From Marsupella aquatica (Eukaryota; Plantae; Marchantiophyta), in contig OZ316899.1 of the NCBI GenBank assembly GCA_973895155.1, positions 3,245,455 to 3,309,454 on the forward strand: DNA of 64,000 nucleotides, written 5' to 3'. The notes under the pieces are model-generated. The model was given only the letters and a program-made list of their open reading frames with translations, did not search any database and had not been told where the DNA came from. Shown here piece after piece: positions 25 to 22,126 of this stretch; the first letter of the stretch is position 1, and the number at the start of each line of letters is the position of its first letter. Made by a program: the position numbers and the translations under genes.

Positions 25-166
25 TGTTGTAACTCATACCTGAGTTAAGTCTACCTTTGGGATAACTACCTATGTAACTACCCTAACTACTTAGGCTGTA
101 GCCACATGTACATATTCTACCAGGAATACAGATGGAACAACTTTTTGTCTCATTTATCCCACAACA
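25..166 (+). repeat. 5' LTR (142 bp)
   Basis: Identical by eye to 3637-3778; TG...CA termini. Confidence 0.97.
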
Positions 167-179
167 CGTTATCAGCACG
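167..179 (+). promoter_or_regulatory. Primer-binding site, complementary to the anticodon arm of cytosolic tRNA-Ile (half-tRNA type)
   Basis: CGTTATCAGCACG abuts the LTR. Its reverse complement CGTGCTGATAACG matches the eukaryotic tRNA-Ile(AAU) anticodon stem-loop CGUGCU(A/I)AUAACG as I recall it. Confidence 0.65.
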
Positions 180-1021
180 TAGCTCTCCACGAGCAATCTT
201 TTCTTTGAGAGAAAGGCCAGATTTTCATTGAATGTTTATAGATTTGACATAATTGCCCCTCCCAAGAAGCTATGGATGAGAACTTCGCGATTACATTTCT
301 AATTTTAGGTTTAACAAGGACGTTTGTGATTCCTCCAAATCTCATTGCGGAAGCCATGGACTACTAAAAATAACAATCATCTTGATGTTGACGCTAATGA
401 TGAGTTCAGGCCGAACCATGACGGACCGATCTCATACGGACATTGAAGATCACTTAAGGAGGCACGAGAGAGAGCGAGAGAAAACGATTAAGCAAGAATT
501 GAGAAAGAGTCGGTGTGAGAGAAAGCACTGGCAACGAACATTGATAAGGCGCTGACAAAGAGAATCGAAAGTATTAAGGATTGAGGCGAGAAACAATAAG
601 GATTGAAGGTGAAGAAACCCCTCTGGAAATGACCTTTAAATCTGAGAAGAAACGAAACAAATTCTGATAAGGATAGCAGATAAGGAAAATTAAAGAGGAT
701 CGGTGCATAAAACGATCGAGAGAGGAGGAAAGGCACAAACAAAACAGAGGATCGAAGGCAACCATTCAAAGACTGAGAGCGCATTCCATAAGGACAACAT
801 TGAATAGAGACAAGAATTGAAAAGCAGTACCGCAGAACAGAATCCATAAGAAAAGACTGAACCTCACCCCACTGATCGAAGGCGAAAAAAAATTCAAGCA
901 GCAAAAGCATCGGGAGGCACTGGCAAAGAACCATAAGAGAAATGACGATCAAAAAGCAGAAAGAAGAATTTGATTAGGACATCGCGACCTCATAGGGACA
1001 GGCCTCGCTCGATAGCCAATT

Positions 1022-1758
1022 ATAGCCGCACGGGATGCAGCTATCTTGGAGCAAAATTCGGCTATCACGAAGAGAATAGCTGCATATGAGGAGAGAGACG
1101 CTGCTCTTCTGCTACGTGATGTAGCTTACGCTGATCGAGATTCCGCCACAGAGGAACGCGATGCTGCTGTTACAACTCTTGATATTTCAGCGAACAACAC
1201 CCTTGTTGAAAAGAGGCCATCAGTGAAAGATTCAAAGCTCTTCCATACGCTGAGTATGAAAAAGAATTGTACTATTGTAGGAGTTTTTCATCAGGATCCC
1301 TTGTCTTCCACACGGTACAGTGCTATTGTTCAAGAGCAAAGTGACCTTGGCAAGATTGACGATGCCAAAAGAGTCAATTTGTGGGTTTCCTAGGAAGAGG
1401 AAGCTAATAGTGAAATCTACGCTCGATCGCACAGTGCGTTCAAAAAAGATCATGTCGTTCTCCCCAGGAGCATCGTTTGGAGCTTGGAGATAGCGGCGAG
1501 GCCGATTACCTGAAGGGCCCGAACGATGATGTTCACATTGATAATGTGCACTACCCCATTCCCCACTGCTCCTGTACAGGTGTGAGACAGCAGTGTTACA
1601 GATGGGGTAACGGGGGCTGGCAGTCCTCGTGTAGCACTACTATGATCTCCATGAACTTTTTGGAACAACTTGGCTCCGAAGGGATAAATGTAAATTATCC
1701 TGTTGATTTGAAGGAGCACTGGGCAAAGCATGGAACTAACCGTTACGTTACAATTTGA
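1022..1758 (+). pseudogene. BPC: Captured BBR/BPC (BASIC PENTACYSTEINE, GAGA-binding) transcription factor gene fragment, class II-like
   Basis: N-terminal alanine-zipper repeats IAARDAAILEQN...EERDAALLLRD...DRDSATEERDAA. C-terminal GAGA_bind motif PIPHCSCTGVRQQCYRWGNGGWQSSCSTTMISM...PVDLKEHWAKHGTNRYVTI. The two parts are in different frames and the DNA-binding domain has an internal deletion. Confidence 0.92.
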
Positions 1759-2653
1759 TAACAAGATGAAGCATGCTCCGTCATTCAAGATCAACGACAT
1801 GTAGGGAAGTTTCCGTCAATCATATTTGTGAAGCTCTCTCGACAGGCGCAAAATGTTTTGGTTTCGGGGGCCAAGTGAGGCACACTGGGCGTTTGCCGAG
1901 ATGATACGTGGTTATACTGACGCGTCTGCACGAGTTCCACATTTGAAGTATATAATACTGTTGTATTTTGTAAGTTCATGGAGATCTACGTTTTGGAACG
2001 AGTCATCAGACCCTATTTCCAGTCCGTGAAGGCGACCTCATACGGAAGATTGATTCATAAGGAACACCCATACGCCTAATTCCCAATTGAAAAGATAGGA
2101 AGAGAGAAGACGCTACAGAAATCGAACGCAGATCGTGAGCAAGGCAGGCAGCATCGCGAACATATAAAGACAGTCCATGATCGAACGCAAAGGGAGAAAC
2201 TGAAAACTCCGAAGGAAAGAATGCGAGACAGAGGAGAAACAATAAGCACCAAAGGCAAGGAGGATAAATCCAAGAACATTGAAGGAAGCACAAACCCGAC
2301 AAATCAAAGAGAGAACGTGACGAACGCCAGGAGAGAGAAGGACGTCCAGTGCAGACGGAGATCGTGGTACAAGCTAAAGATGAGACGTCGGGCAAAGGAG
2401 GCAAACAAAGAGAAGCCATCAAACCAAAGGAAAGTCCTCCACCTTTTCTTCTAAGAAGACCATTTTACACTAAGTAAATGGAGAACTAAAGAACAAAGAG
2501 ACTTTCTCTTCAAGAGGAAAGAAAAACCAAACAACAAAGCATGAAGTAAGGACATAAAGAAAGAAGCTAAAGTACAGAACCTACATGGCGACAAACGATG
2601 ATTACTTCCACCAATTAATTTCATAAATTCAAGGGGAGATATTTTTCCCAGGG

Positions 2654-2815
2654 GTGCCTACTACACATAAAAGCCATGTGCCTACTGCACATGGAAGCAA
2701 ATGGGTGCCTACTGCACACCCAGCCAGAAAGGAAAAATATTTGACAAATTGAGGGGGAGACCTCAAGCAAGACTTGCCTCCCAGAAATTTAACCCATGGG
2801 ATGTGCCTACTGCAC
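2654..2815 (+). repeat. Four dispersed copies of GTGCCTACT(G/A)CAC in the internal region of the Copia-type element
   Basis: Copies start at 2654, 2678, 2705 and 2803. Confidence 0.8.
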
Positions 2816-3626
2816 AAGTGCTTTTCACAACAATGAATATTTAAAAATGGAACTACATTCCATGAGTTAGAAGCATATGGCCAAATTATGAAAAAAAAAT
2901 GCATTAAATCACCAATATTGGATGACATGTCATGATGACTAAAATTGGAAATATCAAAGACCCCACATCATATCATATGATCATATGAAGTATGGTATCA
3001 CATTACAAGGTACTATCAGGTGTGGTATGACTTGGTAAGGCACCATGACAGATGGTACGTTATACCTTGATAGGAAATCCCTATGGTATATGAGACCTAG
3101 GATTGGACACTCCAAACGATTCCAAGGCCAATGGATTTCAATCAACCATATCATCTTCATTATGAGCTAATACCTTGTTTGTTCCTTGCATGTAATCTAT
3201 GACCATTGAGGAATCTTCATTACCTGACCGGGAAGAGACGAAAGACACAAGACACAATTAACTTTGCTAACACCAACCAAGGAGGGTCTTCAACAAGCCT
3301 ATAGTGTTGACAAACACCTTAAGATACTTTGTAGAAATACATACACTATATACTTAAATCCAATTATGTTTCACCCATGGGGATGGTAATACTCTTTCCT
3401 CCCACAAAGAAAGTAGGGGAGGTTTTAATGAGGTTACATCCCCCACTTTCACTTTACCATGCAACATGAATTATAAGACATCCATTAGGAGAAGCTTTAC
3501 ATTCATAGTAGACTTGAGATGGCTGCACCATTTATAAAATAGGCTAGACATAAACAATACCTATTGTATACCACTGAGTATACCCAAAGTAGACTCTTGA
3601 TTGTAACATTTAAACCCCAATGTTAC

Positions 3627-3636
3627 AAAGGGGGAG
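3627..3636 (+). promoter_or_regulatory. Polypurine tract
   Basis: AAAGGGGGAG immediately 5' of the 3' LTR. Confidence 0.9.
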
Positions 3637-3778
3637 TGTTGTAACTCATACCTGAGTTAAGTCTACCTTTGGGATAACTACCTATGTAACTACCCTAACT
3701 ACTTAGGCTGTAGCCACATGTACATATTCTACCAGGAATACAGATGGAACAACTTTTTGTCTCATTTATCCCACAACA
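3637..3778 (+). repeat. 3' LTR (142 bp)
   Basis: Identical by eye to 25-166; followed by TSD ACTGG. Confidence 0.97.
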
Positions 3779-4828
3779 ACTGGCAAATTTTCAGAATTTT
3801 CCGAGCCAGGAGTAGAAAGTTAAAAATAGTTGAATTCGGTAAGTCTTTAAGTCTACCACATTCACCGGATTATGCCTTTACGTTTTTATGCTTTTATGAG
3901 TTTACGTCTTTACACTTTTACGCTTTTACGGGTTCTTACTTAGCCATTTCCCGGCTTTTCACTTACTGAATCGCTGTTTTGACTTTTTGAGGAGTATGAA
4001 GAGGCATGTCTCTTCGACCCTATGACCTCTTACCCTATAGGTTTTTACTATAAGACCCCTCCACCACTAGTGTAGTTTATGGTTAAGTTCTGCATTTTTG
4101 CCTCTTCCTTGTGTTAAACTAGTTGATCATGAATCTATGAGTTCGAGATCAGGTTTAACATTTGGAGAGACTTACCTCCTTCTTGTGTTTTTACCTCTGA
4201 TTATAAACACAGGAAGTAAAATCCATTTGTAAGAAATTTTTGGATCTTGTGATGACAGATTCCTTCTTGGTGACTCATTACAAATTCCTAAGTTCTTAGA
4301 GTTAACTCATTGAGTTTATGTCTTATTGAAATTGATGGATTTTCTTTCATGTTGCTTAGTACCATCTAAATCTTGAAGTAGCTACCTTTTAGATCTTATC
4401 TGAGTACCACTTAGAAAGAAAGGATAAGACATGTTGACGGCATTTTAAAAGGTACTCTAGTAAGCATTTTAGACCTGAAAAGCAAACGTGGATTTGAATC
4501 CTTAAGTCTTTTCATTTTGACTTATGTCTAAGGAGTAACCTTGGTCTATTCTAGACTCCCTTAGCGTACTTTGAGATTATTTTCTCTTGTGTTTTGTTAA
4601 TCATTTCCTTTTCATTAATTTATGTTTACATGATGTTGAGTTATCATTGAAAACTACTCACCGCTGTGGAGCGATCTTCAAAATACCTTATTAAAGTAAT
4701 CAAATTTGATTACTATGTGTGGAAACCATCTTTAGTTCTTTGTTATTGTTTAAATCTATCAAACCAACCCCATCTTGTTCTTTACGGGAACGAATACCGA
4801 GTTCGAAGACCTTTAAATGTGTCTTTCC
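3779..4828 (+). mobile_element. AT-rich Athila-like LTR fragment, host of the Copia insertion and cut off by the LINE
   Basis: Shares blocks with 26486-28164: ATGTTGACGGCATTTTA at ~4431 and ~27733; GTTCTTTACGGGAACGAATACCGAGTT vs GTTCCTAAAGGGATCGAATTCCGAGTT; CTATAAGACCCC. Confidence 0.55.
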
Positions 4829-7695
4829 CAAATCAATTGGCTTGGCCAGGGGAAAGAACCTTCTAAGTTCTATTTCTCATTGGTCAAGGCGAAGCAAGTG
4901 AGAGAAACGATGGAATGCCTAATTGGAGAGGATGGCAAAGAAATTAGGGATGAAAATATGATTATCAAGGAGGTTCAGACATTCTGTGAATCACTGTACT
5001 CTCCACCTGAATGAAGTATTGTGGAGCTTCTGGAGATGAGATCTGCTCGTCGGAGGCTTTGCGAACACACTCATTTCTCCCCGTCTGCCACTGAGAACAG
5101 AAATCTAGATATGTTACCTACCTTATAGGAGGTACATGATACTTTGCTCATGCTACCCAATGACAAGGCGCCTGGAGTGGATGGTATGACCGCCGAGGTC
5201 TTGAGGGCCTCTTGGGATTTTGTGAAAACTGATTTCTATGATATGATCTGTGCCTTTTGGAGGACTGGTCATATTTCTTATAGCATCAAGGATGGAGTGA
5301 TCCGCTTTATCCCCAAAAAGATTGACAAGCGGCATCTGAGCGACTGGAGGCCGCTGACGATGCTTACCATTACTTACAAGATTTTGGCTAAGCTGCTTGC
5401 TCGACGACTGATGGTGTTGCTGCCCCGTATGATTAGTCCGCAGCAGGTTTCATTCCCAGTCGGCATATTTTGGAGAATATCTCGCTTACTTGGTTGGCAA
5501 GCGACTGGATTGAATATAGCAGACCCCATCTCTTTTTGCAACTTGACTTTGAGAAAGCTTTTGATAGGGTCAACCATCTTTACATCTGGGAGACTATGAA
5601 CCTTCTAGGTCTTAGTTCACATTTCATCCTTTTGGTACGGTCCCTATTAAGCAACTCTTGCTCTTAAGTTCTAGTCAACGGTCTTTGGTCTGCTGATATT
5701 CACATGTGCAGAGGAGTCCGGCAGGGGTGCCCCCTCTCCCCACTTCTATTTGCTATATCTACTCAACCCCTAATGGATTTCTGCCAGGCAGAGATTGTTG
5801 CTGGTCGTTTGCAGGGACTCAAAATCTCCCCTTCCTTCACCCTCTGTTTTAGGTTGTTTGCTGATGATCTGGGCCTCTTTATCCCTGCTGATGTGATAGC
5901 TTTTGAGCAAGCCAGAAGCACTATTACCTGCTATGAGTGTGCTGCTGGTGCTAAACTCAACCTGGCTAAATCAACCATCATTCCCCTGGCACTTGAAGAG
6001 ATCCCTGGCTGGCTACAGGACACTGGCTGTACAATCAGCCCTGCTGGCATTGTGCGGAGATATTTGGGTGGACCTCTTGGATCTAATCTTACCGAGAAGC
6101 AACTACATTGCTTTTGCTTAGACCGGATTAGTGCACGTCTTGCATCCTGGTCCACTCGCTTTCTTTCCTTCACAGGTCGTCTACTGTTAATCAAGCATGT
6201 GCTTCAGGCCATCCCGGTCTATCACATGATGTTCCTACTCTCTCCCGCTGCTTTGACTAAAAAGCTGATTGCTTTAAACAGAATTTTTCTGTGGGGTTCA
6301 AACCCGCTGGGTGGAAGACGCATCCCACTTGTGGCTTGGGATAAGATGACTCGACCCAAATCTGACGGTGGACTTGGCCTGAAGGACTTCAAGAGTCACT
6401 CTGATGCCCTTCTGTGTAAGTGGTTTACTGGCGCTTTGGACCATCCTGAATCTGAATGGGCTTGCATGTTTGCAGAATACCTTCGACTTACCAAATGGCG
6501 GAACTACAAGGCTATACGTCAAAGCTCTTACTCTATGGCTGATAAGTTGCTACTCTGTACCCCTTGCAGCTTTGGGAGACTTACGTATACAAATCAGTTG
6601 TGGAGTGCCTGGGAGAGAATGAGATCAAATTTGATTTTTTGTCCTACTGAGGCTGATCACATCCCTGGCCAGTGGGGATTTGAAGATATTATCCGCTGTC
6701 TACAAAGGTTCTACAATTTACCTGAGATTGATATTGTGCTGCTAACAAGAACGTTTGGTTCTCTGGGCATCAGGAGAATTTGAGACTTCTGGTCTACAAT
6801 TGATGGCACTTGGAAAAATGTTGAATTACGTCTACCTTGTCTGAGAGGCCTTACACTTCCCAACAAGACTTTATGCCTCTCTCTTGCCGGTGTGATCCGT
6901 GGTTCTCCCTGTGAGGGAGATGCTACTGCTTCTCGTACCTGCATGTGGCGCTGGTTGGATCGGGAGGAGAGAATGAATCGTTTTGACTTAACAAATGCAC
7001 GTGCTTATGAGTTGCTTCGCCCAAAAGGCACTGACTCCGCCCGACTGAACCGGATCTGGGGGGATTTACCGGATGAGGATTGGAATAGAGTGTGGAACAC
7101 TGTGTGGACTTCTGACCTCTCTACCCGTGCTAAGGTCTTTCTGTGGCGGATTATTGCGCAAGGCTTGTTCTCTGGCTCCCGTGCTCTACGGATTGGCAAG
7201 TCGGATGGCTATTGTGGCTTATGTGCTGGGACAATTAGAACTATTCCTCACATTTTCTTTTCATGCCGTCATGCTTGTTGCTGTTGGCTGGAGGTCCACG
7301 GATGGATGGAGGGTGCACTCTGCGATGGATCACCAAGTTTATTCACTCTGATTTTTTCCACTGCAGGGAAACTGTCTATTCGCTCTCTTTGGATTTACAC
7401 GGTTTACCAGATTCTGTGGTGCATTTGGCTAGCCCGTAATGCTCAGACTTTTGACAAAACTCGTCACAGAATCTTTGATCAATTGCTGGTGATCTCTGAG
7501 ATTCTGGACCACTTGAATGCGATTATCACATCCACTTCGGTGCTGTCTACCTCTCTTTTAAGCCGCAAACACCGACGCCTCTCAGGTGCTAAGGGACTGA
7601 TAGAGACAGAACGCATCAACATTCTTAGAAGTGGGGTTAGGAGGATTGAATCCATCCTGGATGGCGGTGCTGCAGGAGGACACCTGACAATTTGA
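4829..7695 (+). pseudogene. LINE ORF2: reverse transcriptase plus zf-RVT zinc finger, disrupted
   Basis: Motifs KAPGVDG, WRPLTMLTITYKILAK, LQLDFEKAFDRV, RGVRQGCPLSPLLF, LFADD, VAWDKMTRPKSDGGLG, CGLC...HIFFSC. In-frame stops at ~5012, ~5126, ~5665 and ~6781, and a frameshift near 5450. Confidence 0.93.
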
Positions 7696-8177
7696 TCCTT
7701 TTTTAGGCTATAGAAGCTCTTAGTTAATAGTTTACTTAGCTGCCCTTGTGTCCGATCTTTCGGAATTTTTGCTCTTATGCCTGCCCTAGATCTTATGACA
7801 ACATTCCGAACTGCTTGACTACCCCCCCTTTTTTTACCCTTGCAGGCTTGGTTGACTGAGAAGCCTTAGGACCATACTTCTGACAAGACATCCGTCCCCT
7901 TGCACTGGCACTATTTTGATTCTACTTTGCCCTTGAGTTGATTAGATGCAACTGTTTGAGTGCCAGTGAACACTTGATTCTTACTAGTTTTCAACATCTG
8001 TGGGATCTGATGTCCTTGACTTTTTTGGACTCTTATTTGTCCTGTTACTCTTTCGCCCTTTGTGGCTTCTGCTGCCGTTTGGCCTGCTGGTTCCCCCCAT
8101 CCGTGGGGTTCACGCGGAATAAAATCAAAATTTAAATTAAAAAAATTAAAGGAAAAGAAAAAAGAAGAAAAAAGAAA
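4829..8177 (+). mobile_element. 5'-truncated L1-clade LINE (non-LTR retrotransposon)
   Basis: Starts mid-ORF2 (QINWLGQGKEPSKFYF). 3' UTR ends in AATAAA (8118) and a degenerate A-rich tail to ~8177. No TSD recognisable. Confidence 0.9.
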
Positions 8178-8179
8178 GA

Positions 8180-9344
8180 CGAGGTCATCCGTCGACTTAG
8201 GGCAAGGGAAGCCGAGGTGGAAGACTTGAAGGCGGCCAAGAAAGCCCAAGATGAGTTGCGGATTAAGCGGCATGAGCTAAACATCATGCAGGGGCAATTG
8301 GATACCGCTAAGTCTGATAATCAGATTATCAAGGATAAATTGACTCGGACCCAGGGGGAACTGGCCGTTGCGGTCAAGGAAAGGGAGAAGTGGAAGCGGG
8401 AGCTAAGGGATGCAGAGGAGGCCCACATAGCAACCAACAATTGGGCCATGGCGGAGACTCAGAGAAGGGAAAGGGCGTTGAAGGGGGAAGTCGAGGATAT
8501 CCGCGGAGCCCTTGAGCAGAAGGAGGCCGAGTTAGGGAAATCCTATCAAGGGATTATTGTGCTGCAGTAGGAGCTTGCATCCCTGACGGCCAGCTTCAAG
8601 GCCGACCTGCGTGAGAAAGACGACCAACTCAATTAGACTTATGCCAAGATGAATAAAATGGAGTCTGAGGTTGTAGCGGAGCTCGACAAGGAGCTAAGAG
8701 CAACACAGGCGGAGAGGGTTACCTTAAAGAAGGAATTGGAGGAAGCCCAAAAGGAGCTGGAGGAGGCATGCAAGGACCTGGACGAAGTGCAGGAGGAGTT
8801 GGAGGAAAGCACGAGGAAGATGGAGAACTTACAACGGCGAGCCGACAACCAACCGGAGCGGCTAAAGAAACAAGCCACAGTATTTAAGTGCTTGGCTTCA
8901 TCAAGTCCAATTGGGGCAACCAAGTTGCCAGGAGTAGTACTGGCCGAAGGACAAGCCGCGACACTTGCACCGGTGCTGGAGATAAGTGGCAAGGGGAAGG
9001 GACCAGCTGCCAAAATAGGGAAGAAGAAGAAGCAAAAACCTTCTGGGTCAGGGAGTAATGCGGCTTCTCAAGCCGCCGTGACAGAGGAGGTACAACCGGC
9101 GCCAACCTCAGGCAGGATCACGGTAGATCCACCCCTAGAAGGCGGGGATGGTAAGGCTGAGGCCAGAACAATCAGTGATGAAGCCGGGGTATCGGATCCT
9201 CCACTAGAGCATGTCGAGGAGGCCGTAGCCGTATTAGAGGCCGTGGCCGATGCTGAGACCAAAGCCGAGGGTGGACCCAGGCAGGCCGATGGAGAGTTGA
9301 CTTGGTCCGGGGCAGGTAATCTGTCAGAGGACGGACCTACATAA
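8180..9344 (+). pseudogene. Coiled-coil plus acidic-tail ORF fragment, probably the C-terminal half of an LTR-borne accessory gene of another family
   Basis: ORFs 8217-8570 and 8649-9344 are in the same frame, separated by stops. Heptad-rich (ELDKELRATQAERVTLKKELEEAQKELEEAC). Downstream TTAGGA repeats and TTAGTGCACC resemble the post-ORF region of LTR 57652-61639. Confidence 0.55.
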
Positions 9345-10307
9345 GTGGCTGCAGAAGAAGCGTTGGGGGCATCCATTGAGGATCAGCCACCACTACCATG
9401 ATGGTGGTGGAGGGCCGCTCCTTTTAAGGAGGGCGGACGTGGAGGGAGGAGGTGTGAGTGGGCAAGGTGGGCTCAGATCTCCAAGTTTAGAATTAGGATT
9501 AGGATTAGGACCAGGAGGCGACCCTGACACTTAGATTAGTGGGATTGCGGATCCACTGGTAAGAGCAACACTTGTGCTTCTGCCTCGCTATACATAGGTA
9601 GATTACAGTTAGGTAGATTAGGCTTACGCTGCAAAGAACTAGGCGGATCCACTGCCAGGATAAGTACCTGGGCTGCGGGGAGTTTGGGGCCTTCTTCTTT
9701 AGCAAGTTTTTAGTGCACCAGCAGGGCTGGGATCAGGTAGTAAAAGAAGCTCTCGGTTAGTTATACTATGACCCTTGTGTATATTCACGTTTCCTCATGC
9801 CTAAGAGATGAATAGAGTTGGCCTCACGGATTAGTTCGCAGATCTTGTGTATGAGAAGTATTGTTTGTATGGCAAGTGCATGGTATAACTCAGTCAGAAG
9901 GAGTCATTTTGCTATTTGTGTGTCGCATTAACTTGTTTGAAGATTGCCCACATCAACCAAGAGAAGGGAGTAAGCAAGGTAGTAAGAGTTGGATGTGTCG
10001 AGCTGAGAGAGGTCTTAGCGGCTTACCAAAGCCAATTGGGGATCATTCCGGCGACGGAATCCAAACATACCTAAAGGAAGACCAAGAGAGGAGACCAAGG
10101 GAAGACATAGAAGAGTCTGGCTACGTATCTCATGACCCGATGAAGGATCTGTCCAGTATATGTGTGTAAAATGTTAGTAGAAGGAGGTTAGCAGCGTCCC
10201 ATGCCGCTAAGCCGCAAAACCGGCCTTGCCAAGGGCGAAACTTGCGGGAATCAGCTTGTGCAGGGGGTTTCTTGGGTTTAGGGAGCCATGGGACGCACCA
10301 CAGCCAC

Positions 10308-10540
10308 TCTGCTTCATATGCATTTAGAGCAGGTGGCCTTGGACTTGTGTGGGACACAGCTCTCCAGCAGTTAGTGGAACCTACTGCTGATGAGAGAGAG
10401 CGTGCTATGGGATTTTTGACTGGCACCACTACAGTGCCTCTGTGTTAGAGGGTTTGCGGCACCAGGTTCTTGGTCAAGCAATGGATCTGAATTGTTTGAC
10501 TTGGACTATCTGCTTGGGAGTAGCTAAACAGTTGCGGATG
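10308..10540 (+). pseudogene. C-terminal remnant (motifs IX-X) of a C5-cytosine DNA methyltransferase domain
   Basis: SYAFRAGGLGLVWDTALQQLVEPTADERERAMGFLTGTT-(frameshift)-GLRHQVLGQAMDLNCLTW fits the DNMT motif IX (E.Er.mGFp..yT) and motif X (R...lGns) pattern. The second part is in frame with the RT ORF at 10751. Confidence 0.72.
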
Positions 10541-10750
10541 CGCTCTGCTGGAATTACCGATTGTCCCTTGGTGAACTTGCGGTCCACTGAGAGAGTACTC
10601 ACCACAACTGGGGGCGAGCAGACAATCCATGGACCTATGGCAGGATTGGCCAAGGCTGAACACATTGTTGAGCAGGAAGGGACTGATCAATCTACTGTTA
10701 AATAGCAATCATCGGCTATCTCTTCTACCCTACAAAGAGATATTAAGGAT

Positions 10751-12042
10751 TTGGTGGAGAGTTGGGAACTACAGCTTGGCCCTAAGTTGACAGGGGAGGA
10801 GAGACGTCGCATACATCAAATCTTGAAGAGTTACCAAAATTGTTTTGCATTTAGCATGAAGGATTTGGGGACATTAAAGGGTCCTGGTATTCAAATTGAA
10901 TTGGCTAGTGATGCGCCAATCTTTTGTAGGCCATACCGTTACAGTGACATGGAGAGAGCTCTGATTCAAAGCAGAACTCAAGATTTGTTGGAGGCTGGAT
11001 TGGTGGAGATTTCATATGGGAAGTATGCATCTGCCACAGTGATGCCAGCCAAGAAGGATGTGCATGGCAATTACACAGATAGGCGCATGTGTGGTGATTA
11101 CATACCCATTAATTGTCAGACAAAATCTGATAGATATGCCATGCCCACACCTGAGGAGATCTTTGATGTTGTGGGGCATGCAAAGGTTTTCAGTTCATTG
11201 GATCTGAGGGCAAGGTACCATCAGCTTCCAATTAGGCATGCTGACAGGTCCAAGACAACATTCTGGGGGATTGATTCTTGTGGCAAAGATCGTTTGTATC
11301 AGTGGTTATTCTTACCATTTGGGTTGAAGAATGCACTAGCTGAGTTCCAGAGAGTCATGGATCGAATCCTTGCAAGTTTGGATTTTGTCAGATGTTATAT
11401 TGATGATATTTTGGTCTATTCTTCTACTGTGGAAGAACATCAGCAGCACTTGCAGATTGTGTTGGAGAGATTGAGAGCACATGGGTTGAAGCTCCATCCT
11501 AGCAAGTGTAAGTTCTTCCTAAACCAGATTGAGTATTTGGGTCACACTATATACCCAGGGGGATTGGGTGTACAGCAGACTAAAGTGGAGGCCATTACAC
11601 AGATTCCTTGTCCTACTGATGTGAGTAGAGTTTGTACATTCTTGGGATTGGCGAGCTACTACAGGAGGTATGTTAAAGGATTTACCCAGCTTGCTAAACC
11701 TTTGACCATACTCACTAAGTTGGATCAGGAATGGATTTGGGGTGATGACCAGGAGCATGCCTTTCAGGAGTTGAAGCAAAGGTTGGCATCATCCCCTATT
11801 TTGAGAAGACCCATTTCAGGCAGACCATTTCAATTACACATTGATTGGAGTGGAGTAGGACTTGGAGCAGTGCTAACTCAGAAGGATGATGAGGGGAATG
11901 AGTTTGTTGTGGCTTATGCCAGTAGATCAAACAATTCAGCAGAGGCTAAGTATAGCTCTTATGAGGGAGAGTGTTTGGCAGCAATGTGAGCTGTTGCACA
12001 CTTTGGTTGCTACTTGTTTGGTAACCCCTTCACCTTGATCAC
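10751..12042 (+). pseudogene. pol: Gypsy RT (YIDD intact) and N-terminal RNase H
   Basis: RMCGDY, KVFSSLDLRARYHQL, LPFGLKNA, CYIDDILVYS, FLGLASYYRRYV, FQLHIDWSGVGLGAVL, YSSYEGECLA. TGG>TGA stop at 11987. Confidence 0.95.
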
Positions 12043-13017
12043 TGTCACACCCATAACCCGGGCCTTAAATCCGAGTTATTTCCTTGGGGCGACCGCAACC
12101 ACCAGTAGGGGTGAGGGTTTGGGCAAGGAGGTGTGTAGTTGTCCTAATTAGCCCTAAATTGGGCTAAGTCAATATACTTACCGGTATAATACTTACACGA
12201 CTCGCATTGATCATAGGTATATTTGTTTCCACCGCTGGAATATTCCCACAGTTAGTGACTCGGACTAACTCCCGGCTTGGGGCTTTCAAGCCATCAACGC
12301 GACAAAACCTTGTGACATGCAATTGGTGGCAATCCCTACCATTAGTCTACACCCGGTACGTCCCTTGAAATGGCGCCTTTGCCCAGACAAAGCATACACA
12401 CAACACCAGTTACACGCGGTAGAATCAGAGGGAAAAGACTACATTTACTCAGCAAAAAATCAGTTTACATAGTTGACTCGACTTCTAAGGGGGTCAGCAG
12501 GCCTAACGGCAATCGATGCCCAGTCTCTACGAGGCCCCGCCTTGCACTTGCCCCGCATGCTTGACTCTTGCTCTCACTCCTTAGTGCACTCTGACCCTGC
12601 TCAGGCCGGGACTCCCCGTGCCTTGCCTTTTCTTGCACTAAGATAACTAAGCCTTCTCCCTGTCCTACAGCAGAAGGGGAAGCCTAAATACTACGTTTGC
12701 GGAAAGGAGCCGGAAGATACTACCTCCCGGGGTAATGCCTACTGACTAACTACCTTCTGACTAACCGGCCGCACTCCTCTGACCGGTTGACCGTCAGTGG
12801 CGGGGGCGCTGATCGGGGTGGCAGTAGCTAAGTCTACTGACCAAAATTCTAGTCCATTGATGGACTCTATCCTACGTCGGCTGATCCTAATTGATCCTGT
12901 CCTAATTCTTCCTTCGGCGCCTAATGACAGCTATTTTGTTGTTAAGTCTAATAAAATAGATGCTGCTGACTCAACTGCCTCGCGCAGCGCCTACTCACAC
13001 CCTTTGCTAACCACCCC

Positions 13018-15482
13018 TTACATGCATGCTGTGGTTGGACCAGGGTTTGTCCCCTTGTCGGGGCGAGACCTCAACCTGCCTTGATCAGAGGTGAGTCCAG
13101 GTCTTGCCCACTGGAGGACGAGCAGGGTAATGCGATCCTACAAGGCCTTGTTATCCCGTACCGCCTCCTCTGCCTCATTTGCAGCTTTGTCGGCCTTGGT
13201 CTGAAGCCATGCTACCTCTAGGCTAAGCTAGCCGATGGAGTCACGATGGGCCTGGTCCTGCGCCAGCAATTTATCTCGCTCGACGGAGAGACTAGCCACC
13301 TGCTGAGCTGCTTGCAAGAGTTGGTTGTTGAGGTCGGTCAGGCTGGTAACCCAAGCCGAGGATTATGAGTGCAATTGAAGCATGGTGTCGTCCAGCTTCT
13401 TGAGATCTGCTTGCGCCGCGCTCAACTCTTGGCTTAGTCCATCCCGTTGTTCAACGGTTCAAACTAACTCCTCACGGCGGGTAGTGGCCTCCTCTTCGAG
13501 GTGTTCTACTAGCATTTGGAGGCGCCTGATCTCGTTCCCCTTTGCCATGAGTTCTTCCTCCAAGCGGCTTACGATCTGCAGTTGGTGCTCTAACATGAAG
13601 AAGGTTGGTTGGAAGTACGCCGAGACCTATTGTCCGATGTACGTTGCCAGCTCCCCTGATAGAGTCTGACTAAACTTCTGGACCAGGTCGTAGGCCATGG
13701 TCCTCGCGGCTACTTGGTAGTCCTCCATCCTCTCGGGCACCAGTGGTTCCTCGGGCGGGGCGGCGAGCTCCTCCGTAGTCTGCAATGGGGAGGGGAAGGT
13801 TTCTTCAGGTGGTGGAGGGATTGGGGGTGGTTGTACTGGGGGTAGCGGAGGCTCGACTGAAGGGGGCGGTGGAATTTCAACGGGAGGAGGTGGTAGAGTA
13901 TTAGCCGGGGCCACAGGCTTGTGGTTTGCTTGAGGCGTGGTAGTCCGCTCGCTCGGGGTAGCCTCCTCCGGAGCGGGGGTGACACTAGTTGGGGCTGAGG
14001 TGGCCATATTCTTTCCCTTGGCCTCCCGCCACGCTTTGTACTAGGCGAGGATGATGGCGATGTGACTTCCCAGGTAGGTCCTTCCTCTGATAGACATACC
14101 TCCTTGAGTCCGCCTAAGCTCCCCTGAGACTGCGGTAAAAGAATTGGGCCCAGTTCCGTCGTTTGTACTGTTCCACCTGTACGATCGTATAGAGGGAGAT
14201 CTCGGATCGTGGCTCAATCATGTGTAGGGTAGTCCGTATGAAGTTAAGCCGCTCCATACAGACTAAGTTGGTGCATGACCCTTGCTTGTACCCATTGTCC
14301 GTCTTACCCTCGGGTTTGAAGTGTCGGGGTGTATACTCTTTATCCCGAATTTGGAGTTCAACCGACACCGGCCCGCTTGGCAGACAAATTAAAAGATATG
14401 TGCCAACCGATGCTCCGTAAGTGATAAGGTCTGCCCTGAAACCTTGGTGATCGCTGCGTCAGTGTTGAAGTTGGATATGAACTCATAAACCTCCCTTGGT
14501 CCGACTGCGTTAAGTCTCCATAGCAAGTGAGCAAACTGCTCCAACTGATGCTCCTTGAGATAGTCCGCGTGGTTGGGTTTCTTGATCGCGGTCCAGACAA
14601 CCTCGGGGACGTGGATTACCTGTAATAAGTTAGGCTGTTGATTATCCGAGGGCCATCGAGTCTGGTTGGTCGGTGGGTTAGCCTGGGCAGGTGTAGGGGC
14701 GGCGTTGGTTTGCGTTGTTGGTTCGGGGGCCGGCGTCGTCCTTGCCCGCTTCCAAGAACGCTACTCAAGCTGCGGACTAACACTGAACCCAAGGAACACT
14801 CGGTGTTGTTCACGGGACGGACTTGGGACCGGTTAGGTGGTACGCCGGTGGTCATCGGCTGAGGGGCTAGGGGTGGCGTCGGGGTGGCCATATCCCAGTT
14901 GAAGGCATTGGAGCTTTCCCCGAGGAACGTAAGATTACGCGTCGCTTCCTGTTGTCTGTTGATGTCTTCTTCATGCTTCTCGGTTGCAATCTGCTGGTCG
15001 ATGTATCCTGGGATCTTGTCAAACTCCATTGGAGTCAGCCTCTGGCTGCCCCTCAGCCTAAAGAACTTTGCGGGGACTTCAAGAATTGCCTCTGCTACCA
15101 ATCTAAACCCCTCCTCGCTGATATATAGCTCGGTGATGTAGCCCCGCAACTCGTTGTAGCTGGAATCCCTGGTAATGGCTGTCTTCTCACAGTTAACCTG
15201 TGCTACCCTGGCCACCAACTTCACGTATCTTTGTTTGTAAGCGGCTTTCTCGGGGCAAGAGTACCAATAAGTCTCGGAGAACTTAGCACCTACCTTGCCA
15301 AACAAGGTCCAAAATCCCAAGGCTGTAAGGGTCATACTAACCTTTGTAGTCTGGTTTGTCGAGTCCGCGTTCCCGCTCGGCCGGTTCGCTCCCTGGTGGA
15401 GGCCTTACTTGTCCTGACTAAACCCCGCCACAATCCGCTCTTACCCCTCGATAATTTCCTCGTAAAAGTTAACTTGATTTGA
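13018..15482 (-). pseudogene. LTR-borne accessory gene, degraded copy
   Basis: Fragments MTLTALGFWTLFGKVGAK..., ...IEPRSEISLYTIVQVEQYKRRNWAQFFY..., ...EETFPSP...MAYDLVQKFSQTLSGELATYIGQ match ORFs 40387-41643 and 39247-40326. Several C>T/G>A stops. Confidence 0.9.
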
Positions 15483-16725: not shown

Positions 16726-18380
16726 ATCATTGATCATCAGCCTCTTAAGTGGTTAATGGAGTCTGACAAGCTTACAAGGAAGCTTGCACGATGGGCATTG
16801 TTGTTACAAGAGTATGATTTCCAAGTGGTGCATAGGCCTAGAAAAGTGAACTTGGATGCAGATGGATTATGCCGCAATCCATGTACCAATCAACAGGATG
16901 AGACTAGAGCTAGATGGCATGATGAGTCAGATAAGGAGATGGTGCCAGGATGACATGCATCTGCCTTTCTTTGTTGGGTGCCAACATACAGTGGATCTGT
17001 GGACTCTATCTCATTGGATGGAGTGAATGATGAGTCTTCAGATGTGGATGTTGGTGAGGTAACTTCTGGACAACAAGATATTCACAATGATGTGAGAGTG
17101 TTGGAATATTTGCGCAGTGGTTCTATTGTTGGCAGTATTGATACCAAAGAATGTGACAGGATTCTACAGAGAGCCAAGAGGTTTTGATGGGAGGGAAACC
17201 ATCTTTTGAGAGTACTGCATGATGGTAGGGTGTTGGTGGTACCAAAACCATCACAATGAGTACATTTGGTGCAACATGCACATGAGGAGTTGGGTCACTT
17301 TGGTGTGAAGCGCACTTACAGCTTGCTGCAGACACAGTATTGGTGGCGTGGTATGCACACTCATGTCCAACAGTTGATAGCTAAGTGTGTGGTATGTGAT
17401 AGAGTGAGAGCATCATTTAATGCTCACACTCCCCAATTGCACCCGTTGCCGATCATGGGTTTGGGATATCGTTGGAGTTTGGATTTTGCTGGTCCATTAC
17501 CTCTTACCCAATGTCATAATCGGTATGTTTTGGTCATGGTGGAGCACTTCTCCAAGAGGATTGAGCTAGTGGCATTGCCAGATGAAGCCAGTGGAAGAGT
17601 TGCTGCTACATTTTTGGATCGTGTACTCAGTCATTTTGGAGCACCAGCTGAGGTGTTGACTGATCAGGGAACTGAGTTTCGTGGAGAGTTTGAGAGTTTA
17701 TGTGAACAAGCTCTGATTGATCATTGTACTACCTCTCGTGATCATCATGAGGCAGATGGATTAGCTGAGAGAATTGTGCAAACTGTGAAGAGAGGATTGC
17801 GTAAGTATGACTTGCAGGTTGGTCATCTGGGAGATTGGGATCTCCAGCTACCTTGGTTAGCTATGGGCTACCATTTCAGTTGGCAAGCATCACTTGCATC
17901 CTTCTCATCTTACTTTTTGCTCTATGGTAGAGAGCCAGATTTGCCAGATTTGCCAGCAGCTATTCGTTGTGATGCTGCACCTATTGTGAACTTGGATGAT
18001 CCTGATGTTTGGGTCAAGGTGTGTTCAGAGAGAGCACGAGTATTTCAGAGAGTGATGCCCATGGCTTTTGACAAACTTGCAATTGCCCAACATCGTGATA
18101 CTTTGAGGTATGCCACTATTCGTGGAGGAGGTTATTGTGCAAGCATTCGACAATTTCATCTTGGTGATTATGTTTATTTGCAGCAGACAACACCCACAAC
18201 ACTTGATATGACCGCAGGCCAGACAATCTTACGTGTGCGTGAAGTATTGCCTTTTGGTGTCCTGATGTTGGAGGGACGCGATGATATGGTTTGGAAGGAT
18301 CATGTGCGCAACTGTGCTTCATGTCACCTTCCCAACATTGATGGTACAGTAGATCTAAGCTTGGCACATGTTTGTGCTGG
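16726..18380 (+). pseudogene. pol: RNase H end, integrase zinc finger and core
   Basis: DHQPLKWLM, RWALLLQEYDF, HEELGHFG...WWRGM...CVVCDR, WSLDFAGP, LTDQGTEF, DGLAERIVQT. CGA>TGA and TGG>TGA stops. Confidence 0.93.
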
Positions 18381-18387
18381 CTTGAAA

Positions 18388-18527
18388 TGTATGTTGTGTG
18401 GATCTGCTCAAGAAGCAGCTACTATGTTGATTTGTGATAAGTGTTCTAGAGGATGGCACATGTCATGTTGACACCACCATTGTAGGTGATTCTTAATGGA
18501 TCATGGTTGTGTCCTCAGTGTCGGTGA
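18388..18527 (+). pseudogene. PHD finger (C4HC3) at the integrase C-terminus
   Basis: CMLCGSAQEAATMLICDKCSRGWHMSC then, after a 1-nt shift, LTPPL*VILNGSWLCPQCR*. Confidence 0.9.
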
Positions 18528-18702
18528 AGCCGACTAGTTATCATTTGTGTTCTCTTGGTAGATATGGATTGCAGGTAGGTGATTGATGAGGCTCACTTGC
18601 ACCCGGCCTCTTGATCTTCATACCTAAAAAAGTGTATATCAACCTTCTAGAACTCATGGCTAGCTAGAGTTAGGGGACCTTACTCCCATCTAAGGGAGCA
18701 AT

Positions 18703-19305
18703 TGTGGGTTTTGGACATGTGTGGACATGAGTTCCACTTGTATTCCATTCTCTTGTGTTTGTGATGTGGCAGTGTGACTATGTCTGGATGTATGTGACAA
18801 GCGATGTATGTTGTGTAGCGATGTGTATGCGCACGATAACTGTCACACCATTCTAGGTAGTGTTAGAGTGTATCGTACTATCTAGATCCGTATGTTTGGT
18901 ATGTGTGCTATATGAGCCGATAAGGTTCCATCAAGTTTGTGTGAGAGGGTACTTCTCACTCGTGAGGCATTGAAAGGTCATCTTTCAATGTTGGGCCTTG
19001 GAGAGAGAGGAGCTTGAGTGTGGCTATGGTGGCTGTGAGCTCTGCTTGTGTAACATGGATTCCTTGAGTAGTGCAAGGTGCGTTGGCTTAACATACGTGT
19101 GTGATCGGATCGGTGCGGGATCGATGGGGTATTGTTGACCGAGATCATTGTGCCGATTGTATTGAGATTATTGTGGGTTTTGGACATGTGTGGACATGAG
19201 TTCCACTTGTATTCCATTCTCTTGTGTTTGTGATGTGGCAGTGTGACTATGTCTGGATGTACACAACAAGCGATGTATGTTGTGTAGCGATGTGTATGCG
19301 CACGA
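18703..19305 (+). repeat. 3' LTR region of the DNMT/PHD Gypsy with a 134-bp direct repeat (18703-18836 and 19172-19305)
   Basis: Starts TG after the PPT; the second copy is cut off just before the element starting at 19317. Confidence 0.7.
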
Positions 19306-20574: not shown

Positions 20575-22126
20575 GTGGCGGCCAAACCGTCGACCGCCGT
20601 TGCAAACACGGCGAGTGAGGAGCAACATCAACTTAAAGGGAAGGAGGTGGCTGATCCTTCAAAGGACCCGTCGAGCGACGACGGCTCCGACTCAGATGGA
20701 AGCGACGACAATGCCAAAGCTGAATCGGAGGAAGGGGGTCAGGACCCGGAAGAGGAACTGATCCCAGCCTTGAGAGGGTTGAACGCGGAACCAGAAGATG
20801 ATGTTGAGCCGGATGTCATAGTGGATAATTTGACTAAGCAAAACCAAGGCGACGCGGGTGATGCCTCAGTCCCGAGAAGTCATGGTGCTTTCAAAACGCG
20901 GGGAGTATCACCAAAATCCACAAAGGAACCTAAGGATAGGCGGCCCGCAAAGGAAAGACGGTTGGAGGACCGTCCTCACACAACCCGCAAGGGCCCAGCC
21001 ACTGACGATGGATTGGGTCCATTGACTCAAGACCAACGACTCATTTATGAGCAGCTGGAACACAACAAGGAGGCCCAGATTAAGTACTTGCTTAGTCTGG
21101 GTAGTCAGAGTGCGACGCGTCCCAAAGGGGGAATGGTAGTTGGACGGAGTATGTTCCAAGTGAACCAGCTACCGACTCCTCCAACTTACGACGGGGCTTA
21201 TGAGCAAAGTGGACAAAAGTTCCTGAGTTGGCTCTCCACGATGGAGATTCATCTCCAAGCGTGCGTTGAGCGATCCACTTGGGCTACCGTAGTCGCTCCT
21301 TACCTGAAGGACTATACCTTGACTTGGTACAAGTCATGGAAGAAGTTGAGGGAAGACTCCTGCTTGCCATTAACTTGGGAAAACCTGGTTGAGGGTCTCC
21401 GTGCTCATGTCACCACTAAGTACCCAGAGCGGCACGCTCAGAAATGTGTAACGGAGATGAGCTTCAGGGGTGATATCCAAAAGTTCATCACGTATCATGA
21501 GAACCAGTTGGCGTGTATCCCGGGTGGGCAAGAGACCCTACGTACGCAGCTTCATAACTTTATAGTGAAGCTCCCGCCGTTGCTCAGGGAAAAGTTACAA
21601 GAAAAGCATCATGAGTTTAAAACGCTTTCTAACGCCTTCGACAAGGCCACTACGTTGGTGAATAACCGGCCGGACTTGGCAAAGGTGGGTGGCAAGAGAT
21701 CCGAGGGGGAAGCTGGGAAAAGCAAAAGGTCCCGGGAATAAGCGTATTCAACCTGAGGGGGTGTGGGCCGGTGGTTTGGATCCCCAACCCCAGAATGGAG
21801 AAGCTAAGCGAAACCGAAAGGCCAACAACTTCAAGAAAGGAACCTCATTGGCGCAAAAAGCAAATAAGCAGGCACTCATGGAACAGAGGCGGGCGGAAGG
21901 TTCATGCTTCACGTGTGGTGCCATGCGCCATCAAAGTAAGGATTGTTCCACGAAAGGTGGCAAGCCAAGTGGAGATGGAGGGCAAAAGAGCATTAAGGTA
22001 AGTATTGCTCTAATCGAACCCTTAGTAGCTGACAAGGTCCCTGTAGGGGATGTTCCCGCCGGAGAGAAGGTGTTGTTGCGAGAGAAGATACCTAAAGTTA
22101 AGACAATGGATCCTGAATTTTTGTGA
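20575..22126 (+). pseudogene. gag: Gag (retrotransposon capsid plus CCHC knuckle), frameshifted
   Basis: LSWLSTMEIHLQAC...YLKDYTLTWYKSW; CFTCGAMRHQSKDC. Confidence 0.85.

Follow-up and report, generated by a model that had tools for sequence, protein, structure and literature searches.

Positions 25–3778 of the window, by which we mean the whole 64-kb stretch of DNA analysed, are supported as a single non-autonomous LTR element of 3754 bp that moved as one unit, because a target-site duplication lies at its outer ends and a PBS-like site and a polypurine tract (PPT) lie at the inner edges of its LTRs. Its features, with coordinates in the window and strand, are as follows.

20–24, + strand: target-site duplication, left copy, ACTGG (read directly; identical to 3779–3783)
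25–166, + strand: 5′ LTR, 142 bp, TG..CA (100% identity with 3637–3778)
167–178, + strand: PBS-like site CGTTATCAGCAC, adjoining the 5′ LTR
425–1018, + strand: purine-rich block A, 64–71% purine, non-coding (from composition; no Pfam match, no host BPC homology)
984–998, + strand: direct repeat GCGACCTCATAGGGA, separated by 20 nt from the 5′ edge of the cargo (14/15 match with 2032–2046)
1019–1758, + strand (sense): broken remnant of BPCV-type coding sequence, running from host codon 18 to the stop (from GAGA_bind matches and nucleotide identity)
1759–2031, + strand: host 3′ flank, 3′UTR-like (73–81% identity to the post-stop sequence of loci L002, L003 and L004)
2032–2046, + strand: direct repeat GCGACCTCATACGGA, abutting the cargo on its 3′ side (pairs with 984–998)
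2032–2624, + strand: purine-rich block B, 60–73% purine, non-coding (from composition; no Pfam match, no host BPC homology)
2652–2816, + strand: a 16-mer of GTGCCTACTGCACA type, present four times (from repeat comparison)
3627–3636, + strand: polypurine tract AAAGGGGGAG, adjoining the 3′ LTR (read directly)
3637–3778, + strand: 3′ LTR, 142 bp (142/142 identical to the 5′ LTR)
3779–3783, + strand: target-site duplication, right copy, ACTGG (read directly)

The identical LTRs, the perfect target-site duplication, the lack of any retroelement ORF and the recent mobility described in the initial annotation are all borne out. With 0 differences in 142 bp between the LTRs the insertion is young, and the 5-bp ACTGG falls within the 4–6 bp required at the outer ends of an LTR retrotransposon. 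No retroelement domain was detected by Pfam in 10 interior ORFs, tblastx revealed no likeness of the interior to the gypsy and LINE elements of the 64-kb window, and neither Rfam families nor tRNA genes were found within the element. The claim of both a PBS and a PPT stands for the PPT, which abuts the 3′ LTR, whereas the 5′ site is only PBS-like, agreeing at 8/12 positions with TGGTATCAGAGC, the usual initiator-Met PBS, and lacking its TGG. The TGG of a PBS pairs with the CCA of the tRNA. Since the element is without gag and pol, its mobilisation would rely on foreign proteins, and an autonomous element at another place in the genome is likely to have supplied those for copying and integration. 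Within the 64-kb window there is neither an autonomous partner nor a cargo-free relative, and blastn returned no second copy of the element. No related empty site turned up, the exact ORFs of the element are absent from the protein collection, and no match was obtained for two LTR patterns against metagenome contigs or for the LTR query against a sequence index. That the element is still being amplified in trans, as the initial annotation proposed, is possible in view of the identical LTRs.

The cargo is one contiguous sense block of ~1.0 kb, extending from host codon 18 through the stop codon and ~275 nt of 3′ flank. No host homology was detected beyond 1019 or 2031, and that upstream of 1019, toward the host exon start or intron, is not significant; the limits first given as 965–2010 are thus corrected to about 1019–2031. 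The flank aligns locally to the host loci with a score that 0/500 shuffles reached, in agreement with the ~250 bp of 3′UTR-like sequence previously noted after the stop. Both L004 and L002 have a conserved GTAAGA some 15 nt past the end of their homology to the cargo. The C-terminal piece of the cargo matches the Pfam GAGA_bind profile (PF06217) with E=2.3e-34 (120.4 bits), and the N-terminal piece with E=1.2e-5 (26.2 bits), just below the profile cut-off of 26.6 bits. The initial annotation had allowed that the cargo might lack a significant GAGA_bind match, and the match is present.

Among 1.84 billion representatives, the best protein match to the cargo is P0014 of Calypogeia fissa (172 bits; the next match reaches 113 bits), while length-limited word searches with two pieces of the cargo returned only distant short fragments. 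P0014 is 73% identical to Marchantia MpBPC2 (old locus tag MARPO_YB0017, on a 7.73-Mb record) and only 49% identical to MpBPCU. Nucleotide identity of the cargo is 87.0% to L004, a locus from a Logan sample, 84.5% to the C. fissa locus L002 and 68% to MpBPC2; at the amino acid level its identity to P0014 is 79% over the zipper region and, counting only the matched stretches, 80% over the C-terminal domain. In a phylogenetic tree the cargo is placed beside L004 (86.9/80) and is not part of the C. fissa clade (support 98.6/97). Judged by sequence, the cargo source is of BPCV type and belongs to the orthogroup of MpBPC2, which BPCV/MpBPC2 and the Calypogeia orthologs share with it; ‘parent’ here denotes a lineage, not a locus. 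In Marchantia, MpBPC2 (BPCV) is the V-chromosome partner, or gametolog, of the sex determinant BPCU and is needed for the induction of sexual reproduction (Iwasaki et al. 2021, PMC8699743). The host genes of Marchantia and Calypogeia are intact and conserved, with 3 synonymous and 0 non-synonymous differences between the two C. fissa loci, whereas the cargo is truncated and broken. A second BPC fragment in C. fissa (L005) has no LTRs around it.

The decay of the cargo is extensive. It has no start codon, and its coding stretch spans three frames owing to single-nucleotide insertions at 1367 and 1442 (+1 nt each). A small deletion of 3 nt follows 1198, and a deletion of 75 nt after 1653 removes 25 codons of the DNA-binding domain, and with them RxxGRKMS; the BPC domain has three invariant parts, of which this motif is one (PMC6477699). 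The fifth cysteine has become serine through a change of TGC to AGC at 1633–1635 (CC now CS), and CGA to TGA has created a nonsense codon at 1756–1758. Measured against the domain as described, with five conserved cysteines and invariant RxxGRKMS and WAR/KHGTN (PMC6477699), the cargo keeps 4/5 cysteines and, of the two motifs, only WAKHGTN. The longest ATG-initiated products in its frames are of ~38–45 aa and contain no DNA-binding domain. The BPC regions placed by the initial annotation at 1022–1758 are therefore recognisable by GAGA_bind, but they do not form the single reading frame attributed to them, lying in three frames with 25 codons and one cysteine missing.

The dN/dS ratio is 0.23 between the cargo and L004 compared with 0.13 between host genes, and the divergence of the cargo is therefore mostly of host type, plus a few per cent of neutral decay (~4% by a rough split). 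Alternatively, the low ratio could reflect a cargo that was functional for some time after capture. Because the many lesions of the cargo stand against identical LTRs, the BPCV copy was probably a pseudogene already before the present insertion, and the family would be moving with a dead passenger. As far as the coding sequence tells, the cargo is a decaying passenger rather than a working regulator, and there is no intact captured gene.

The captured copy sits between the two purine-rich non-coding blocks of the element. Neither block shows homology to host BPC loci that would mark it as a possible UTR, nor is one block a duplicate of the other, since shuffles align locally as well as the two blocks do. 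An excess of GAGA motifs in the blocks beyond their composition is not convincing, with GAGAG in block A reached by 10/200 shuffles and the other GAGA-type motifs unremarkable relative to composition.

Taken together, our results make it very probable that 25–3778 is a young non-autonomous LTR insertion, in a Calypogeia-like leafy liverwort, carrying a 5′-truncated BPCV-type pseudogene that had decayed before insertion, with a capture that was probably RNA-mediated. Such a capture would have occurred either by a template switch to a co-packaged host mRNA or by a retrocopy landing inside an ancestral element, and capture through mRNA is plausible. The lack of introns in the cargo is uninformative on this point, because the host segment is itself intron-free: in the host gene one exon runs unbroken from codon 6 through the stop, and the structure of BPC genes has been described previously (PMC6477699).

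A template switch, known for plant LTR elements (PMC13317346), is a route that we put forward tentatively. The reverse transcriptase in a virus-like particle would have jumped from the element RNA to a co-packaged BPCV mRNA within its 3′UTR, copied back to codon 18 and resumed on the element RNA at a point lying, in RNA coordinates, 15 nt downstream of its exit, so that a duplicated 15-mer would flank the cargo. This is consistent with the sense orientation of the cargo, with its being one block of transcribed host sequence only (coding part and 3′ flank), with the absence of a poly(A) tract, and with the 15-nt direct repeat (14/15) that flanks the cargo, to which a 20-nt filler is added on the 5′ side. 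However, evidence from intron loss is impossible for an intron-free host segment, and since the 15-mer occurs a third time, in a weaker copy at 426–440, it may be no more than a motif that recurs in the element.

It is unlikely that the cargo instead arose as a nested processed pseudogene, that is, by a LINE reverse transcriptase placing a 5′-truncated BPCV retrocopy into the DNA of an LTR element, with a 15-bp target duplication, and that copy founding the family. Target-primed reverse transcription typically leaves a truncated 5′ end and flanking direct repeats, and the cargo shows both; LINEs do exist in this genome, as indicated by LINE-type reverse transcriptase remnants (RVT_1 and zf-RVT) beside the element at 5144–7695. 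However, a LINE-mediated origin is disfavoured by the absence of an A-run between the 3′ end of the cargo and the right repeat, and it leaves the 5′ filler unexplained.

Capture at the DNA level, with genomic BPCV DNA copied in by double-strand-break repair or ectopic recombination, appears more doubtful still. In host genomic DNA the captured block forms one continuous stretch, and so it is compatible with a DNA template, but it ends short of the intron and promoter on its 5′ side, likely comprises transcribed sequence only and lies in sense, none of which is favoured by a DNA route. The initial annotation's own reading, a functional BPC transcription factor expressed by the element instead of gag-pol, is barely credible: host BPC sequence is indeed there, with both hallmark family regions recognisable and WAKHGTN kept, but as a 5′-truncated pseudogene whose three frames, missing start codon and nonsense codon contradict this reading for the present copy, as do the deleted RxxGRKMS, the lost fifth cysteine and ATG products that contain no domain.

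With the pseudogene-carrying LTR insertion as the preferred reading, the present copy is a broken passenger, useful mainly for dating the recent activity of a non-autonomous family and as a warning when genes are annotated in liverwort genomes. If multi-copy, a mobile BPCV look-alike could matter for small-RNA cross-talk with the BPCV gene, because the Marchantia member of this type, the partner of the female sex determinant, governs the switch to sexual reproduction. We consider it highly improbable that the sense BPCV fragments of a young, multi-copy element family feed small RNAs, or antisense or decoy transcripts, that act in trans on host BPCV; in that case a leafy liverwort would have a reproductive switch linked to the silencing of transposons.

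Among known kinds of element, the present one is TRIM-like in its LTRs only. A whole TRIM usually measures less than ~1.5 kb, and its LTRs ~100–250 bp; the 142-bp LTRs fit this range, but the element, at 3754 bp, exceeds the size and is too large to be assigned to the group. TRIMs (Witte et al. 2001, PMC61118) and the present element share very short LTRs, a PPT, a non-coding interior and mobilisation in trans, the last being likely here, and the PBS of TRIMs has a PBS-like counterpart in the present element, and Veju TRIMs with captured host sequence are among the cases to which the review PMC13317346 refers in its citations. LTR retrotransposons of flowering plants are well known to capture gene fragments, examples being Bs1 in maize, a TRIM in Arabidopsis and hundreds of cases in rice and sorghum (review PMC13317346). 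A full-text literature search gave, among its 15 top-ranked matches, no paper on such capture in bryophytes or for a BPC (BASIC PENTACYSTEINE) gene.

The element is Bs1-like, a gene-fragment-carrying non-autonomous LTR element, and gene-fragment capture as such was already known. As far as Bs1 is represented by the reports cited in PMC13317346 (Jin & Bennetzen 1994; Elrouby & Bureau 2001 and 2010), both elements are without their own pol and hold sense-oriented pieces of host coding sequence between their LTRs, and Bs1 still transposes. Within those same cited accounts, Bs1 differs in joining pieces of three genes in an expressed chimeric ORF, whereas the present element carries one frameshifted fragment and no usable ORF. 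The host of Bs1 is a grass, while that of the present element is a liverwort.

The element at 25–3778 is a non-autonomous LTR retrotransposon whose interior holds the remnant of a BPCV-type BBR/BPC gene (the cargo). The structural features on which this reading rests, in window coordinates, are:

20–24 and 3779–3783, target-site duplication ACTGG, directly outside both element ends
25–166 and 3637–3778, 5′ and 3′ LTRs, direct repeats of 142 bp, identical at all bases, starting with TG and ending with CA
167–178, PBS-like site CGTTATCAGCAC, adjoining the 5′ LTR
3627–3636, polypurine tract AAAGGGGGAG, adjoining the 3′ LTR

The duplication at the outer ends, with the PBS-like site and polypurine tract at the inner edges, indicates that one element was inserted as a unit; the same features rule out a pair of solo LTRs. 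A 31-mer from the LTR start has only two sites in the 64-kb window, one in each LTR. No Pfam match was found in the 10 interior ORFs, an Rfam search of the element gave no match, and a translated comparison of the interior with the window's gypsy and LINE elements showed no similarity. The LTRs, duplication, polypurine tract and lack of a retroelement ORF reported in the initial annotation are therefore borne out. Its PBS is better called PBS-like, since only 8 of 12 positions agree with the usual initiator-Met consensus, a general rather than a liverwort-derived one.

Purine-rich blocks lie on the 5′ (425–1018) and 3′ (2032–2624) sides of the cargo; they are not duplicates of each other, show no homology to host BPC loci that would make them host UTRs, and have no clear excess of GAGA sites over what their composition predicts. 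In the 3′ interior, a 16-mer of type (A/G)(T/G)GTGCCTACTGCACA occurs in four copies at 2652–2816, three of them in a 24-nt tandem array. The DNA around the insertion is rich in TEs. Immediately to the 3′ side of the element, at 5144–7695 (+), are remnants of LINE-type reverse transcriptase, two ORFs matching RVT_1 and another zf-RVT; gypsy-type reverse transcriptase/RNase H, integrase and Ty3 capsid ORFs occur at 10751–11986, 17266–18468 and 20575–21738 (+).

Comparison with two Calypogeia fissa loci (L002 and L003) and a Logan sample locus (L004) places the homology to host genes in one block, in sense orientation, running from 1019 (host codon 18) past the stop codon and across ∼275 nt of 3′ flank to ∼2031; no likeness to these loci was found elsewhere in the element. 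The 3′UTR-like sequence proposed previously is thus homologous to host 3′ flank. Pfam GAGA_bind matches the C-terminal piece in two stretches (E = 2.3e-34) and the N-terminal zipper piece slightly below the curated cut-off (E = 1.2e-5). Scored relative to L004, the cargo carries the following lesions:

after 1198, 3-nt deletion
1367 and 1442, single-base insertions, shifting reading through three frames
1633–1635, TGC to AGC, loss of the fifth cysteine
after 1653, 75-nt deletion, loss of the RxxGRKMS motif
1756, CGA to TGA

The BPC stretch consequently occupies three reading frames rather than one; it has no start codon, and ATG-initiated products of these frames are ∼38–45 aa long and lack the BPC domain. 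The WAKHGTN motif is present, whereas RxxGRKMS and the fifth cysteine, both among the invariant parts of the domain (PMC6477699), are missing. As judged from its sequence, no BPC protein can be produced from this copy. The captured transcription factor gene of the initial annotation is contradicted by the absent start codon, two frameshifts, 75-nt deletion, lost cysteine and TGA, and the idea that the element transports a functional chromatin regulator finds no support. Set against LTRs without a single difference, at least five disabling lesions suggest that the cargo had been inactivated before the insertion of this copy.

Word searches with short pieces of the cargo returned distant fragments only, owing to the length limit. 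In a representative protein search, the best match was a 288-aa C. fissa protein, P0014 (172 bits versus 113 for the runner-up), which has a 289-aa twin on a different contig and, by word search, is 73% identical to Marchantia MpBPC2 but only 49% to MpBPCU. Female sex is determined by BPCU, whose V-linked gametolog, BPCV (MpVg00350), is required for reproductive induction (Iwasaki et al., PMC8699743). MpBPC2, on a 7.73-Mb record, is probably BPCV because its old locus tag, MARPO_YB0017, is a male-scaffold tag. Coding nucleotide identity of the cargo is 87.0% to L004, 84.5% to L002 and L003, and 68% to Marchantia; for L005, which comprises a second C. fissa gene together with a partial inverted copy of it, the figure is 76–79%. 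Maximum-likelihood trees group the four C. fissa sequences in a clade (98.6/97) with the cargo outside; its position next to L004 is moderately supported (86.9/80, and 91 with a smaller data set). These comparisons name the parent as a BPCV-type lineage, not as a locus. Since dN/dS is 0.23 between cargo and L004 (dS 0.37) and 0.13 between host genes, most of the difference looks like ordinary host-gene divergence; on a rough split, ∼4% would be neutral decay after capture.

BPCV-type genes in Calypogeia have themselves multiplied by more than one route. L002 and L003 (GCA_965154635.1) are collinear 21-kb loci on separate contigs, 95–97% identical, with three synonymous changes only between their BPCV-type coding sequences; the gene lies between ∼2-kb inverted repeats (6904–8968 and 17081–18915, 82–86% identical). 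L005 (1100–2150 (−) and 10001–13924 (+)) holds a third gene, with annotated products of 303 aa and 517 aa, the latter with an unrelated N-terminal extension, and its inverted partial copy, 11 kb upstream, has no LTRs around it. At the 5′ end of the gene (L002 10001–10306; L004 709–1000), the C. fissa gene model opens with a five-codon exon (MQLSM) and a ∼290-nt intron. Where Marchantia has its start codon (MFCR...), Calypogeia has GTG, which makes it uncertain where translation of the Calypogeia protein begins.

In both C. fissa and Marchantia, no intron interrupts the host coding sequence between codon 6 and the stop, and BPC introns are generally confined to the 5′UTR or extreme 5′ coding part (PMC6477699). 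Because the captured segment starts downstream of these introns, their absence from the cargo cannot decide the template. RNA-mediated capture is plausible, an RNA template being favoured because the block comprises only likely transcribed sequence, 5′-truncated and sense-oriented. A 15-nt direct repeat, GCGACCTCATA(G/C)GGA (14/15 match), brackets the cargo, one copy 20 nt upstream of it and the other adjoining its 3′ end; we estimate the chance of such a match so near both junctions at the order of 1e-4 to 1e-3, although a weaker third copy at 426–440 means that it may simply be a repeated element motif. The repeat fits template switching, in which reverse transcriptase would have left the element RNA and re-entered it 15 nt apart, a route that we put forward tentatively. 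It would also fit the target duplication of a LINE-made copy of the host gene nested in the element, and LINE remnants do adjoin the element; with no poly(A) remnant, however, this origin seems unlikely. DNA-level capture of host sequence is more doubtful still.

At usual plant substitution rates, identical 142-bp LTRs bound the insertion age at about one to two million years, and this bound is a loose one. Current activity is plausible. No second copy was found in the 64-kb window, and none with exact element ORFs against the protein collection or LTR patterns against metagenome contigs. A liverwort BPCV-type gene on a 1.1-kb contig (L009, JGI metagenome 3300056830) indicates that bryophyte DNA is present in that metagenome collection.

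None of the 15 top-ranked full-text literature matches described an LTR element with a captured BPC gene, or any such capture in bryophytes. Capture of gene fragments by LTR elements is nevertheless a known type of event, with hundreds of cases in rice and sorghum (PMC13317346). The element resembles Bs1 of maize, an LTR element that carries host gene fragments, as well as TRIMs and further LTR elements that have taken up pieces of host sequence (PMC13317346); its LTRs are TRIM-like, but as a whole it is too long for the TRIM class.
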